Positions 25,531 to 30,563 of a stretch of 64,000 bases of DNA are shown here, piece by piece. The translations under genes and the position numbers were made by a program. The number at the start of each line of letters is the position of its first letter. Positions within the stretch are counted from its first letter, which is position 1. Source of the DNA: Obrimoposthia wandeli (taxonomy: Eukaryota); the NCBI GenBank assembly GCA_977020255.1, contig CDROCS010002027.1, forward strand, positions 62,001 to 126,000, in the 5' to 3' direction. Below the pieces are notes generated by a model, which was not told the origin of the DNA, searched no databases, and saw only the letters and a program-made list of their open reading frames with translations.

Positions 25531-25577
25531 TTTATACTAGGTAATAAAGAGCGACTCGTGATAATGTTATTCCCGCT

Positions 25578-25757
25578 AAAAAGGTGCTGTTTTTTTCAGT
25601 ATAATTGGGAAGAAAGTCTGTTACTAGAACCACTTATTAAGTACTCATTTTTGGTGAATAATACTTAGTTGATCTGTTTTGTTAACCAACCTTCGCTGCC
25701 CCCGCAACGGTAAACTGCTGAACTTAGGTTTAACCGCAGGTAGCCCGGAACCAGCCT
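25578..25757 (+). ncRNA. Cobalamin riboswitch (short type with extended P4)
   Basis: AGGTGC...GGGAA...GCTGCCCCCGCAACGGTAA...AGCCCGGAACCAGCCT (B12 box), directly upstream of cbtB. Confidence 0.9.
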
Positions 25758-25808
25758 TATTAGTCACTTTCTAATTAAATTACACGGGTGAGTGTAAGGA
25801 GTTTTATA

Positions 25809-25988
25809 ATGCATAATTCACAAGTTTTAACAAACCACAACAGATTTACTGTTTCTTCGACTTTCCAAATATCCACTGCAATATTGCTTGGTATTGGATT
25901 ATTTATGTTAGTGGGCTTTGCGCCTATGGAAGTAGTGCACAATGCAGCTCATGATACACGCCATGCATTTGCATTCCCCTGTCACTAA
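25809..25988 (+). CDS. cbtB: Cobalt transporter subunit CbtB
   Basis: One TM helix followed by HNAAHDTRHAFAFPCH; AAGGAG RBS before ATG 25809. Confidence 0.93.
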   Translation: MHNSQVLTNHNRFTVSSTFQISTAILLGIGLFMLVGFAPMEVVHNAAHDTRHAFAFPCH

Positions 25989-26064
25989 AAAACCACACTA
26001 CAACTTACGCTGCCTTTAAACACAGTTAACATAAACTAAGATCTCAATATTGGGAGAAATTTGC

Positions 26065-26808
26065 ATGGCTTTAAGAAATATCCTATTAGCAGCAATCGCT
26101 GTTGGTATCATCACTGGCATCGTTTACGGGCTTTTTCAGCAAACTCAAATTAGCCCTATTATCTACGGCGCTGAACAGTTCGAAGTATTAGACGCCCCTG
26201 CTTCTCATAGCCATAGCACGCAAGAGCAAACTTCAGCTTCGTCTGCAGAAGCCTCCACCCCTGCTTGGTCACCTGAGGATGGCGCTGAGCGCATTTTTTC
26301 AACCATGACAGCTAACATTACTATTGCGATCGCTTATGCGCTAATGATGATTTCTTTGATGGCCTTACATAACGCAAAAGCTAACAAGCCTAAGATTACT
26401 GCAACCAGTGGTGCTCTATGGGGAATTGCTGCTCTGTTAGCTCTTTTCATAGCACCTGCACTGTTTGGCTTACATCCTGAAGTGCCCGGCACTGTTGCAG
26501 CTGAGCTAATTAATCGTCAACAGTGGTGGATGTTCTGTGCAGGTATCAGTCTTGCCGGTTTAGCAGCTTTGTATTACGCACCTGCCAAGTTTAAGTTTAT
26601 TGGTATTATTTTATTAGCCGCACCGCATATAGTGGGTGCTCCATTACCAGAAAGTCATGGCTTTGCAAATACCGACCCTGCTGCCGTGCAAACATTAACC
26701 GCTTTAACCAGCGAGTTCTTTATAATGACCACTATCGGTATGAGTATTTTCTTTGTTCTCTTAGGCAGCTTATCGGGTTTTGCGGTACAGCGATTTGTAA
26801 AGTTATAG
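26065..26808 (+). CDS. cbtA: Cobalt transporter subunit CbtA
   Basis: PIIYGAEQFE, His-containing linker, WSPEDGAER, PEVPG, RQQWW and PHIVGAP; GGAG RBS before ATG 26065. Confidence 0.92.
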   Translation: MALRNILLAAIAVGIITGIVYGLFQQTQISPIIYGAEQFEVLDAPASHSHSTQEQTSASSAEASTPAWSPEDGAERIFSTMTANITIAIAYALMMISLMALHNAKANKPKITATSGALWGIAALLALFIAPALFGLHPEVPGTVAAELINRQQWWMFCAGISLAGLAALYYAPAKFKFIGIILLAAPHIVGAPLPESHGFANTDPAAVQTLTALTSEFFIMTTIGMSIFFVLLGSLSGFAVQRFVKL

Positions 26809-26817
26809 CCTTACTTA

Positions 26818-26844
26818 TGTTCGATGTGTTCGATGTGTTCGATG
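26818..26844. repeat. 9-bp tandem repeat (TGTTCGATG) x3
   Basis: Read directly, 10 bp after the cbtA stop. Confidence 0.85.
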
Positions 26845-26929
26845 TAACAAAGTTAATATACAAAGTCACTTAAACAGAGTTTTGATTTTTTTAAGTGACT
26901 ATTGATCTAAATTTTTAAACAACTTTAAA

Positions 26930-27439
26930 ATGGTAACAGTTGATATGAATACTAATAAACTATGTAGCGTATTACTCGCCCTGCCAAGCTCTTTAAAACC
27001 GATATCTGTTATTGATCTCGTAAACAGGCATAATCGCTTTTTACTGGCAGTACTATGTACAGTACTAATCCCTTTTACAGTGCAAGCAGCGCCCGTAGAA
27101 TATAGTACTAAAACTAGCAATTTCACCTTAGTACTCACGGCACCTGAACCTGTACAACTCAATAAAATTTACAGCTGGAAAGGGCAACTTATCAGTCATG
27201 TTAAAGATTTAAACTTAGGTCAACTTACATTGGATGATTTTACAATTGGTGGAGGTATGCCAGCTCATGGACATGGGCTACCTACGCAGCCTGTGGCCAG
27301 TCATTTAGATAATTCCCATAAACAACAGTTACTATTTGATATCGATGGTTTAAAATTTCAAATGTGGGGGGACTGGCAAATTAAGCTTAATTTGCCCAAA
27401 CAGGATACGATAATAACTAACTTTAAGTTAACGCCTTAA
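26930..27439 (+). CDS. Exported YtkA/FixH-like Ig-fold protein with an HGH motif
   Basis: GGGMPAHGHGLPTQP and GLKFQMWGDWQI motifs; signal peptide ending TVQA. The true start is uncertain and may be downstream of 26930. Confidence 0.7.
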   Translation: MVTVDMNTNKLCSVLLALPSSLKPISVIDLVNRHNRFLLAVLCTVLIPFTVQAAPVEYSTKTSNFTLVLTAPEPVQLNKIYSWKGQLISHVKDLNLGQLTLDDFTIGGGMPAHGHGLPTQPVASHLDNSHKQQLLFDIDGLKFQMWGDWQIKLNLPKQDTIITNFKLTP

Positions 27440-27526
27440 TTTAGACTTTCTAATGATGCTACTTACTTGTAAACGCCAGTCACTGTATAAACAACAGAGT
27501 AATTTTTAAATGAAAAAGCCAGTTCC

Positions 27527-28825
27527 ATGCTAAGAATATTTTTGGCTGTAACCCTGCTAGCAGTACTCAGCTGGATCGGGCTATTTGATCGCCAGCATGC
27601 AGTAACTTGGTCAACAGATGAACTGGCACGCATCCAATCTTTAGTGCTCCCAGCACCTGCTATATTAACGCAAAGTGTTGTACACACAGGAAACCAATAT
27701 TGGGATAATTCTTTAGCTATAGCACTTGGAGAACAGTTATTTTTTGATAAAGCCTTAAGCGGTAATGGCCAAATTGCTTGTGCAACTTGTCATCTACCAC
27801 AGGAAGGCTTTGCTGACCCACAGCCTTTTTCACGTGGAATAGGCGTTACAAAGCGCCATTCCCCTGCTTTGTTAGGCGTGGCTAGCAGTGCCTGGTTTTT
27901 CTGGGACGGTCGTGCAGATAGCCTTTGGGCGCAAGCACTAGGACCACTTGAAGACCCTGCTGAACAAGGCGCTAACCGGTTACAATTAGCTAAATTAATT
28001 CGAACAAAATACTCCTTTCAATATCAAGAAATATTTGGTGAGTTAGCTGATTTTAGCGCATTACCTGATAATGCAACACCTGCAACAAACAATGTTAAAT
28101 GGCAGCAAACTTGGCAAAATTTACCACTGCTCGATCAAACAAATATCAATCGTGTATTTGCAAATATTGGAAAAAGCATCGCTGCATTTGAATCAACATT
28201 ACTACCAACGACCACTAAATTTGATCGATTTGCGAGAGAGTTGTTAGCGACAGGTGAATCAAATTTACTTAATCGACAAGAAAAGCAGGGGCTAAAAATA
28301 TTCATTGATGATCAAACTGGCCAATGTATGCGCTGCCATAATGGAGTTTATTTCACCAACAATGATTTCCAAGTAACGGGTATTAAGGATACTTTCACCC
28401 CTTTAGGCACGGGTAGAGCCGAAGGTGTTCAAAAGGCGCTAGATAATGAATTTAGCTGTGCGGGTTTATATGCCGACATTGAAGATAAAAATAGCCAATG
28501 CCAAGAATTAAAGTTTGCTAAGCGTTCGGGAGCTGAATTGGAATATGCTTTTAAAGTACCGAGCTTGCGCAATGTTGCCCAAACAGCACCTTATATGCAC
28601 AATGCTAGTTTAGAGACTTTAGAAGAGGTATTACATTTTTATACTCGCGCTGTCTCTCAATACACAAACGATAAAAACCTTGAAACTGATCAGCAGAAAA
28701 TACATTTAGATATCGAACCGCTCACTTTAGCTTCAAAACAGTTACAGCAACTTGCTGCCTTTTTGCATACTTTAAATTCTGCAACTAAATCAGCAGCTAA
28801 ACTTAAGCTTCTGCCTGAAATATAA
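27527..28825 (+). CDS. Di-heme cytochrome c peroxidase family protein, MauG/MbnH-like
   Basis: Two CxxCH motifs (CATCH, CMRCH), FFWDGRADSL, FKVPSLRNV and APYMHN...VLHFY. Confidence 0.88.
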   Translation: MLRIFLAVTLLAVLSWIGLFDRQHAVTWSTDELARIQSLVLPAPAILTQSVVHTGNQYWDNSLAIALGEQLFFDKALSGNGQIACATCHLPQEGFADPQPFSRGIGVTKRHSPALLGVASSAWFFWDGRADSLWAQALGPLEDPAEQGANRLQLAKLIRTKYSFQYQEIFGELADFSALPDNATPATNNVKWQQTWQNLPLLDQTNINRVFANIGKSIAAFESTLLPTTTKFDRFARELLATGESNLLNRQEKQGLKIFIDDQTGQCMRCHNGVYFTNNDFQVTGIKDTFTPLGTGRAEGVQKALDNEFSCAGLYADIEDKNSQCQELKFAKRSGAELEYAFKVPSLRNVAQTAPYMHNASLETLEEVLHFYTRAVSQYTNDKNLETDQQKIHLDIEPLTLASKQLQQLAAFLHTLNSATKSAAKLKLLPEI

Positions 28826-29056: not shown

Positions 29057-29644
29057 TTACAATTTTTTCATATAGGCGCTAACAAGCACTACCCGAGTAC
29101 CATTAACACGCCCTTCGATATGCTCAGGATTTGAAGTTAAAGAAATCCCGCGTACGGTTGTGCCACGTTTAGCAGTAAAGCCTGCACCTTTAACGACTAA
29201 ATCTTTAATGATAGTAACATTATCACCTGCTTGTAACGCTGTACCATTACTATCTTTAGTTGGGGCTACCGCCACTGCATCCGCGATCATTAATCCTGCT
29301 TGTGCCCATTTCTGATTGTCATCATCTAGGTAGAGCATTTCTAATAAATCTTGCGCCCACAACTCGGTTGAGAGCTGCTTTAATTGACGCCAAGCCATCA
29401 CCTGTACTACTGCTTCTTGGCTCCACATACTGTCATTTAAACAGCGCCAGTGGTTAGCATCCATTGTGTCAGGTGCTTGAATTTGATTTAGACAAACTTC
29501 ACAGCATAAAATACTGCTATCTGAGCTAGCACCATCATTAGGCTCTACATTATAAGCTGCTAAATTAGCATCACCTGCACAAAGTTCACATTTACCATTG
29601 CTGCGTTTTTGTAAGGTATCTAAAATTGTCATGATTTTGGCCAT
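29057..29644 (-). CDS. phnA: PhnA/YjdM-domain protein with N-terminal Zn ribbon
   Basis: CELC and CCEVC Zn ribbon; KDSNGTALQAGDNVTIIKDLVVKGAG...KRGT. Confidence 0.88.
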   Translation of the reverse strand: MAKIMTILDTLQKRSNGKCELCAGDANLAAYNVEPNDGASSDSSILCCEVCLNQIQAPDTMDANHWRCLNDSMWSQEAVVQVMAWRQLKQLSTELWAQDLLEMLYLDDDNQKWAQAGLMIADAVAVAPTKDSNGTALQAGDNVTIIKDLVVKGAGFTAKRGTTVRGISLTSNPEHIEGRVNGTRVVLVSAYMKKL

Positions 29645-29828: not shown

Positions 29829-30563
29829 TTAGGGGGTTAATTGCTGTCGCTGTGGTTTAACACTAGATGGTTTATCTGAGGAGGCTTCTTTTGTCGGTAA
29901 AGCCTGGCGCCCAGGGGCTATATCATTGCTATGTGTAGCCGTTCTTAAACAGTTAATATTTTGAGGTGCACAACCAATAAGTGGATTTTGTGCAATCTGT
30001 AGCTCTACATTTTGTAATTTCAATTTAGATTGGCGGTTAAACCCTGATGCTAGATTTCCAGAACTAACAATGAACGTATCAACATAATCGCGATTCAATG
30101 CTGAGGAGGTTAAGCGCACTCTACGATTAAAAAAGTTCTGTGCAGCAACGACTACAACATCATTAGGTTTAGGCACACTGACTGTTTTGTAAGACAAGCT
30201 AATAGTTGCAGCTAAAGGCTGCTTGTCGGCATAGTTTCTTGCTGACACAATTTGTGCATTTGGCGCTATATTGTCAAAATTAGAGTTATAAATTATCGTT
30301 TTAACCACAGGGTGCTTTCTAGCATCATTTCTAACCGCTACCACTTGCACATTTGCGGTTATATGACTAAAACTTTCCAATTGCGGCTTTATAACCGCCG
30401 TTGGTATTTTCTTACTAACACCAGCACCGTGACTTACAACGGCTGTGGTATACGCAGCCTTATGCTCGGGTTCAAAATTATACTTAATAGTTAAATCGGC
30501 AGCTTCTATTGCACCGAACCATAAAAATAGAACGCTAAAAACTATCCGCTGCACAATTATCAT
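29829..30563 (-). CDS. Exported hypothetical protein
   Basis: 244-aa ORF with a signal peptide ending AIEAA; no family recognised. Confidence 0.65.
   Translation of the reverse strand: MIIVQRIVFSVLFLWFGAIEAADLTIKYNFEPEHKAAYTTAVVSHGAGVSKKIPTAVIKPQLESFSHITANVQVVAVRNDARKHPVVKTIIYNSNFDNIAPNAQIVSARNYADKQPLAATISLSYKTVSVPKPNDVVVVAAQNFFNRRVRLTSSALNRDYVDTFIVSSGNLASGFNRQSKLKLQNVELQIAQNPLIGCAPQNINCLRTATHSNDIAPGRQALPTKEASSDKPSSVKPQRQQLTP

Follow-up and report, generated by a model that had tools for sequence, protein, structure and literature searches.

Di-heme enzymes with His/Tyr ligation, namely MauG, BthA and MbnH, form bis-Fe(IV) species and oxidise Trp of partner proteins (PMC6405878, PMC11951088). 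The copper site of MbnP consists of His, Met, kynurenine and water, and its kynurenine is made by MbnH (PMC11951088). With regard to metal transport, YtkA domains traffic copper outside the cytoplasm, one of them being fused to the importer YcnJ of Bacillus subtilis (PMC13344008), and CbtA is listed among the Co transporters (PMC2667541). Here, we describe a locus found in a 64,000-nucleotide (nt) stretch of DNA, hereafter the window, from contig CDROCS010002027.1 of the Obrimoposthia wandeli assembly (GenBank:GCA_977020255.1, positions 62,001 to 126,000), in which a B12 riboswitch is followed by cbtB, cbtA, a gene for a small exported protein and a gene for a di-heme c-type enzyme. The cobalt-transport role of CbtA/CbtB is itself a comparative-genomic prediction; for marine bacteria that produce B12, CbtAB is one of the chief importers predicted for cobalt, a metal that in seawater is vanishingly scarce and strongly complexed, and we know of no account of how cobalt reaches CbtAB in the periplasm. 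A first-pass annotation had read the locus as a cobalt-acquisition system analogous to MbnP/MbnH and had named no description of such a combination; in agreement, a full-text literature search, which covered papers other than subscription-only ones, returned neither cbtAB with a di-heme enzyme nor a YtkA-like/di-heme pair. The analysis suggests that the two periplasmic proteins, which the predicted importer has acquired in a small group of marine bacteria, form an undescribed helper step in cobalt uptake.

The riboswitch, cbtB, cbtA, the small-protein gene and the di-heme gene were all located on the forward strand as the first-pass annotation had placed them, and the three gaps between the genes, which it had put at ~76, ~120 and ~87 bp, measured 76, 121 (136 from the conserved start ATG at 26945) and 87 nt. 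The Cobalamin (B12) riboswitch aptamer (25565-25773) matched Rfam RF00174 over the full model (1-189) with 44.3 bits, above the gathering threshold of 31.5, and the 5′ leader on the cbtB strand was accordingly assigned to this family. Its 3′ end is 35 nt from the cbtB ATG and 22 nt short of the ribosome-binding site of this gene (TAAGGAG, 25795-25801), a position typical of translational control. The small membrane subunit CbtB (25809-25988; PF09489, E = 2e-19, 69.9 bits) has 59 amino acids (aa) from the ATG at 25809, with an in-frame GTG at 25788 and a His-rich C-terminus, and exceeded the cut-off of TIGR02459 (71.8 vs 64.4 bits). CbtA (26065-26808; PF09490, E = 1.1e-30, 107.7 bits), a multi-pass membrane protein and the other subunit of the predicted cobalt importer, has 247 aa from the ATG at 26065, the same length as that annotated in the related locus L003, with an alternative TTG start at 26050; its score with TIGR02458 was 152.6 bits, under the equivalog cut-off of 182.9. 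Being above the Pfam cut-offs for PF09489 and PF09490, adjacent, and behind a B12 element, the two were assigned as CbtB and CbtA.

A scan of 185,579 species, one genome per species, gave 94 confirmed loci with the small-protein gene, 80 of which were examined. The whole cbtB-cbtA-small-di-heme unit recurred in ~9 distinct gamma- and alphaproteobacterial lineages. It was present in L001/L008 and L003, close relatives with flanks as in the window; in L088 and L106, which are more distant and have an M16 peptidase upstream; in L002/L009/L107 (Pseudomonadales metagenome-assembled genome, MAG), with other flanks, 13-nt gaps and a 1-nt overlap; in L007 and a JGI contig, in which the small and di-heme genes overlap; and in L010 (Sneathiella), L011 and L089, which are of alphaproteobacterial type with other flanks and an extra open reading frame (ORF) of ~110 aa after cbtA. 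In several of these loci, the genes are tightly packed, 13-30 nt apart, or overlapping. The extra ORF between cbtA and the small gene (108-118 aa; L010:6661-6990, L011:251-571, L089:4161-4517), absent from the window, had no signal peptide and no Pfam match. Cobalamin model matches, all full-length, were found upstream of cbtB in 7 of the 7 loci spanning that region, window included: besides the window, L001 (42.3 bits), L003 (46.8) and L088 (42.7) were above the gathering threshold, and L089 (30.2), L010 (24.0) and L002 (23.4) were below it and significant in local search (E = 1e-5 to 8e-4). Four loci that have the pair but no cbt genes (L004, L005, L090 and L091) gave no riboswitch match at the gathering threshold. 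Both the four-gene unit and the riboswitch, whose conservation the first-pass annotation had proposed to check, are thus maintained next to differing flanks, and since this conservation extends over independent lineages the arrangement is not due to chance.

In a quick IQ-TREE analysis of 66 di-heme sequences, in which the midpoint root served as a drawing device only, the cbt-linked enzymes formed one group (Shimodaira-Hasegawa-like approximate likelihood ratio test, 98) nested in the family tree and sister (support 100) to the enzymes of the L090/L091 pairs, which precede another multi-pass membrane protein. Enzymes of pairs linked to amine oxidases formed a separate clade (support 100), and those linked to galactose-oxidase-like proteins branched deepest under the midpoint root. 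As the cbt-linked pairs form one clade, the pair appears to have been recruited to cbtBA once and then kept in Alpha- and Gammaproteobacteria, which we regard as the firm part of the interpretation. The membrane protein after the L090 and L091 pairs (L090:6392-7423, L091:6413-7027; beginning AHVRWFV) had a weak DoxX match (E = 0.002), is followed in L090 by a cytochrome P460 gene, and may be an alternative membrane partner.

The partnership of the small protein with the di-heme enzyme extends beyond the cbt operon. A di-heme homologue with 35-58% identity to the window enzyme is directly downstream of the small gene in ~70 of the 80 loci, and in at least five loci (L040, L087, L036, L045 and L064) the two genes share one frame. 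Translation showed that L040 (Polyangiales, 540 aa) and L087 (gammaproteobacterial MAG, 517 aa) encode true fusions, each consisting of a signal peptide, the small domain, a linker and the di-heme domain with its Tyr retained. In Granulosicoccaceae, the small gene stands alone, yet four of five genomes encode a di-heme enzyme of the family elsewhere (~435 bits). The loci of this bacterial family are L013, L029, L035, L042, L048, L058 and L111-L118; the gene order around the lone small gene is a cold-shock gene, the small gene and a flavin adenine dinucleotide (FAD) oxidoreductase gene, and the same genomes hold a second, divergent small plus di-heme pair (MPxHGHGMNY...HMPGxWQW). The pair was found in several phyla, including cultured carriers such as Marinobacter salarius, Thiothrix, Nitratireductor and Mesorhizobium, and the annotations at NCBI and JGI call these proteins only "cytochrome c peroxidase" and "hypothetical protein". 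Because the two genes are adjacent, fused, or both present though unlinked, the genomes compared indicate that the two proteins are an obligate, old and strongly maintained pair.

The di-heme enzyme (27527-28825, 432 aa) belongs to the superfamily of bacterial cytochrome c peroxidase (bCCP) and MauG, as identified by PF03150 CCP_MauG (E = 5.8e-39; 134.5 bits vs a cut-off of 25.6) and by containing two CxxCH heme motifs, CATCH (residues 85-89) and CMRCH (residues 267-271). HMMER alignment placed Tyr372 (28640-28642, in ..TLEEVLHFY) in the Met-ligand region of the Paracoccus cytochrome c peroxidase (CCP) 2c1u (..AVKIM), against Tyr294 of MauG (..TAILFY in 3l4m-type chains, counted from the printed alignment) and against the Tyr of MbnH 6e1c (..VIDIY). 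By this alignment a Tyr replaces the Met of the six-coordinate heme, as in the MauG-type (His/Tyr) subgroup, the ligation itself being predicted. Tyr372 was invariant in 43 homologues, together with both heme motifs, Trp126 and a Cys311/Cys325 pair; the His/Tyr assignment of the first-pass annotation is therefore upheld. The best PDB match of the C-terminal part was MbnH, and no methylamine dehydrogenase (mau) genes were found near the di-heme gene. These observations support placement of the enzyme on the MauG/MbnH side of the superfamily.

The small exported protein (26945-27439, 164 aa) is a beta-sandwich that is distantly YtkA-like in sequence and CrdA-like in structure. Its longest ORF has 169 aa from 26930, to which the residue numbers given here refer, and carries GGMPAHGHGLPTQP and KFQMWGDW; the ATG at 26945 (MNTNK...) is conserved in L001 and L003 and was taken as the start. 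The N-terminal hydrophobic stretch ending VQA/AP was read as a signal peptide, and we infer that both this protein and the di-heme enzyme are exported. An AlphaFold2 (AF2) model based on 57 homologues, with a predicted local distance difference test (pLDDT) score of 87.4, and >93 over residues 56-167, showed an eight-stranded beta-sandwich, for which both Foldseek (E = 7e-5) and VIA (Z = 10.5, root-mean-square deviation 2.7 over 100 of 108 residues) gave as top match CrdA of Helicobacter pylori (9ll2), a periplasmic copper/silver-binding protein. The next VIA match had Z = 9.1 and the remainder were in the generic Ig-like range, PmoD and FtrA-P19 scoring 6.9 and 6.7, respectively, while MbnP, MopE and CorA were absent from the top 50 VIA fold matches. 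No Pfam or NCBIfam model matched at ordinary thresholds, none of NCBIfam matching at E up to 10, and the YtkA model PF13115 gave 12.5 bits vs a threshold of 25.9 (E = 0.24). PF13115 is carried, however, by more remote relatives from a word search (P0006-P0015, 32-56% identity within the aligned region), and the nearest ESM Atlas clusters are named YtkA-like. The label YtkA-like in the first-pass annotation can thus be kept in the sense of distant homology, not of membership at the curated threshold. Relationship to MbnP was found neither in sequence nor in fold, and the motif is W-G-D-W instead of WxW; the deep paralogue of Granulosicoccaceae has WQW.

Alignments of the family revealed an invariant G-G-M-P-x-H-G-H-G-L-P...G-x-K-F-x-M-x-G-x-W signature, from which Met110 (27257), His113 (27266), His115 (27272), Met145 (27362) and Trp149 (27374) emerge as a candidate metal site. 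Since the genome scan used the pattern MP[AS]HGHGLP, the invariance of that part of the motif is an ascertainment effect. Members found by means of the di-heme enzyme vary it (MLAHGHG in L088, MPAHAHG in L090 and MPGHEHG in L091) and retain all five residues, as does the deep paralogue of L115-L118, and the five-residue invariance is on this account free of search bias. Side chains alternate along strand 147-154, with Ile151 and Leu153 hydrophobic; Trp149 is probably, from this pattern, the top layer of the hydrophobic core beneath the loops bearing His113, His115 and Met145. Adjacent to the site, all 11 members of the cbt clade plus the sister pair have Trp146, which none of 16 others compared has, position 148 is in the same set always D/E/N/H/Q, and two insertions are also found there; it is a speculation that these changes could retune metal specificity.

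Most of the carrier genomes searched appear to make B12 and to need cobalt. The assembly containing the window (1.35 Gb, 6912 contigs) holds at least a dozen different bacterial CobN/CbiB loci, none of them on the window contig, and is a metagenome-like or host-plus-microbiome assembly, whose searches do not describe one organism. Because it mixes many bacteria, the B12 pathway was judged from related carrier genomes, and three of the four searched, G001 (the closest relative found), G003 and G004, encode both CobN and CbiB, consistent with aerobic B12 synthesis and a cobalt requirement; G002 had a partial CobN match and no CbiB.

Taken together, we tentatively favour, at a little under an even chance, the reading that the unit is a B12-riboswitch-controlled cobalt-acquisition operon, in which CbtB/CbtA work with a periplasmic metal protein and its dedicated His/Tyr di-heme enzyme. 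An MbnP/MbnH-like Trp modification and cobalt specificity are plausible, and the analogy with MbnP/MbnH is favoured in a weakened form because of the His/Tyr signature, the closeness of the MbnH model and of MbnH in the C-terminal structure, and a partner with Met/His/His/Met/Trp. Scarcity of B12 would switch the operon on; with oxidising equivalents from H2O2 or O2, the di-heme enzyme would then act on the small protein, most likely on the invariant Trp149 beside His113, His115, Met110 and Met145, oxidising it as MbnH does MbnP. Once matured, the small protein would capture the scarce metal in the periplasm and pass it to CbtAB. That the metal is cobalt, that Trp149 is modified and that the metal is handed over to CbtAB are steps we infer. 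The interpretation that the first-pass annotation had put forward is partly supported: conservation of the unit, the His/Tyr side of the enzyme, its obligate pairing with the small protein and the Met/His/His/Met/Trp set of the latter agree with it, but the partner is no homologue of MbnP and the enzyme scored under the MbnH-family cut-off.

The genes adjoining the pair outside cbt point in another direction. Neighbours were clustered in 84 loci and representatives annotated. In ~16 loci of Gammaproteobacteria and Myxococcota, the pair is adjacent to a gene for a giant protein of 1400-2200 aa, and in ~12 loci, from Thiothrix, Thiolinea and Marinobacter, it is directly preceded by two genes for copper amine oxidases (PF01179), so that copper amine oxidases or galactose/glyoxal-oxidase-like giants stand beside the pair in ~28 of ~77 non-redundant loci. 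The giants next to the pair (e.g. L014:1530-6752, reverse strand) are secreted and have PA14, galactose/glyoxal-oxidase-like Kelch plus E-set, and lectin-type domains, as well as a CCP_MauG domain of their own. In Rhizobiales, the pair is found among putA, asnC and pfkB with no metal link, and genes for copper enzymes are absent from the surroundings of every cbt-linked locus. The first-pass annotation had named a tie of the pair to copper genes elsewhere as a sign against a cobalt role; such a tie was found in part, to copper amine oxidases and galactose-oxidase-like proteins.

Several observations weigh against the cobalt-acquisition reading. Judged by the neighbours just described, the pair family at large keeps company with exported oxidases that depend on copper. 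Between the cbt clade and the copper-enzyme-linked clades the putative ligand residues do not differ, and Met2His2 ligation is usual for Cu(I) rather than for Co(II). Because the pair adjoins copper enzymes outside the cbt clade with its ligand residues unaltered, the metal bound by the small protein in the cbt clade could still be copper. Trp149 may be purely structural, and an enzyme-substrate fusion would be unusual if the protein were modified only once, so that the fusions suggest a standing complex. With respect to the enzyme, the grouping with MauG/MbnH made in the first-pass annotation holds for Tyr372 and for the best NCBIfam model, TIGR04039 of the MbnH family, but not for the score, 155.6 bits being far under the cut-off of 362.85; MauG model TIGR03791 gave 117.2 bits vs 443.85, which leaves the enzyme outside that family. 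Foldseek ranked MauG and bCCP structures near-equal (E ~1e-14) for an AF2 model of the enzyme (pLDDT 84), and fold was therefore rejected as a means to separate MauG-like from peroxidase-like enzymes. Among 61 relatives of G001, 18 had cbtA above the Pfam cut-off and only three of these 18 had the pair; CbtAB therefore needs no such pair in general, and the pair is an accessory of a minority. In regulation, the riboswitch abuts the ribosome-binding site of cbtB, and any control of the distal genes would require polarity or mRNA decay. The spacer after cbtA, considered below, adds to these points.

A broader and bolder form of the same idea holds that the small protein is a cobalt chaperone, its site being made by a bis-Fe(IV) di-heme enzyme oxidising Trp149, and that the pair at large metallates exported copper oxidases and, in one clade, feeds a cobalt importer. 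We consider this form rather doubtful.

The main rival to the cobalt-acquisition reading is redox-coupled uptake. EfeUOB, FetMP and FtrABCD (P19) combine an inner-membrane permease with a periplasmic beta-sandwich metal protein and a periplasmic redox or heme enzyme, and the pair may likewise be a standing two-subunit enzyme, whose small protein holds a metal ion, either as its own copper cofactor or as cargo, while the di-heme enzyme repeatedly oxidises or reduces the cargo or the organic ligand that binds it, for instance by freeing cobalt from strong Co(III) complexes or by coupling oxidation to transport. The natural fusions argue for such a permanent partnership; a permease, a periplasmic beta-sandwich and a periplasmic heme peroxidase are also the parts of EfeUOB, P19/FtrA and FetP are among the weaker fold matches of the small protein (Z = 6.7; Foldseek E = 4e-3), members of the cbt clade retain the copper-type ligand set, and in the sister clade the pair precedes another membrane protein. 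On the other hand, His/Tyr ligation and affinity to MbnH/MauG indicate protein-radical chemistry on a partner rather than redox chemistry on a metal ion, the similarity to P19/FetP goes no further than a generic Ig-like fold, and there is no known need for cobalt redox chemistry before transport by CbtAB. On balance, redox-coupled uptake is unlikely to be the right description.

Less likely again is a role confined to copper, in which the small protein would be a periplasmic Cu(I) trap or chaperone that holds copper off the cobalt route or supplies a cuproenzyme and, though co-expressed with cbtBA, never binds cobalt. The ~28 loci with copper enzymes beside the pair and the ligand residues identical across clades speak for it, as do the best fold match, which is copper-binding CrdA, and the distant kinship with YtkA/CtaK domains, which are copper-trafficking domains. 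However, such a role gives no reason why B12 should control the handling of copper, the cbt clade is monophyletic with substitutions of its own near the site (Trp146 in 11/11; D/E/N/H/Q at position 148), and its loci are those without copper enzymes nearby.

The spacer between cbtA and the small gene bears on whether the four genes are one unit. In the window lineage, it measures 136 nt and contains a conserved intercistronic hairpin (26864-26900, forward strand, minimum free energy fold) with a stem of ~12-14 bp and no U-tract directly 3′; its arms are kept in L003, and because L001 has exchanged them for a different complementary pair, AGCCGTAT/ATGCGGCT, the structure is conserved. The hairpin may serve in partial termination, in processing or in stabilisation of the transcript. 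An intrinsic terminator after cbtA was rejected, as the terminator scan flagged none, this hairpin included, and the hairpin lacks a U-tract; the whole spacer folds no better than shuffled sequence (z = -0.54). Upstream of the small gene, there is a weak promoter-like hexamer pair (26902-26931). In a search of sequencing runs, those with this sequence were of DNA type only, and no RNA run was found. Co-transcription of cbtBA with the pair in the window lineage is thus uncertain, the tightly packed relatives being what suggests it. The spacer also contains three tandem copies of the 9-mer TGTTCGATG (26818-26844, read directly from the sequence, no strand assigned); this appears to be a young microsatellite-like expansion, because L003 holds ~1.5 copies and L001 none. 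That the pair has its own promoter, performs a peroxidase or unrelated periplasmic oxidation function, and was inherited beside cbtBA by mere neighbourhood would agree with the 136-nt spacer, the hairpin and the hexamer pair, but is improbable, as cbtBA and the pair have stayed adjacent in both Alpha- and Gammaproteobacteria next to differing flanks, the genes of several loci are 13-30 nt apart or overlapping, and the cbt-linked clade is monophyletic.

Downstream of the unit, a convergent gene for a YjdM/PhnA-domain protein (29057-29644, reverse strand, 195 aa) closes the unit; it has a long N-terminal extension and a weakly matching zinc ribbon, and is 97% identical in L001 and L003. At 29829-30563 (reverse strand) lies an ORF of 244 aa that matched no model of Pfam or NCBIfam and whose product has a hydrophobic segment at the N-terminus; in its position L001 has a 213-aa gene.

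If the cobalt-acquisition reading is true, the economy of cobalt and B12 in the sea would gain a new element, namely a dedicated, B12-switched step of capture or processing in the periplasm, and if oxidation of Trp149 is part of it, the small protein would be the first metallochaperone for cobalt with a protein-derived cofactor. Should the broader form be right, a widespread maturase-plus-chaperone system would have gone unrecognised in the YtkA-like/di-heme pair. Irrespective of the metal, the analysis defines a tight, sometimes fused, partnership of a Met/His/Trp beta-sandwich protein with a MauG/MbnH-like enzyme, by which the largely orphan His/Tyr di-heme enzymes gain a second candidate class of natural substrate after MbnP, and cultured carriers make this partnership testable.

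Compared with described systems, the window unit resembles MbnP/MbnH in that a His/Tyr di-heme enzyme is encoded beside a small exported Trp-containing partner in a metal-uptake locus, and in that the His/Met/kynurenine site of MbnP resembles its invariant Met/His/His/Met/Trp set. It differs from MbnP/MbnH, as well as from MopE and CorA/CorB, in having a partner of another fold and family, and from MbnP/MbnH also in lacking a TonB-dependent transporter and methanobactin genes and in being regulated by B12/cobalt instead of copper. With MauG/preMADH and BthA, the enzyme shares two c-hemes, a Tyr at the position of MauG Tyr294 and a conserved Trp between the hemes, and its Cys311/Cys325 pair is reminiscent of the disulfide that BthA has near its six-coordinate heme (Cys415-Cys430); identity is ~26-28%, however, and the enzyme is paired with a small metal-binding protein instead of the precursor of a dehydrogenase.

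Like YtkA/CtaK, YcnJ and CrdA, the small protein has an extracytoplasmic beta-sandwich domain, putatively for metal trafficking, of a kind that acts beside a membrane importer or as a fusion with one, whereas its invariant GGMPxHGHG...MxGxW is its own and we know of no dedicated di-heme partner in those systems. With EfeUOB, FetMP and FtrABCD (P19), the unit shares the three-part logic, a likeness of architecture only, as the fold matches are weak (Z = 6.7); the families are unrelated (DyP-type, i.e. dye-decolorizing, peroxidase vs bCCP/MauG) and the metal there is iron. The B12-riboswitch cbtAB operons have the same order of riboswitch, cbtB and cbtA and carriers with CobN/CbiB, and the window unit differs from them by its two added periplasmic proteins.

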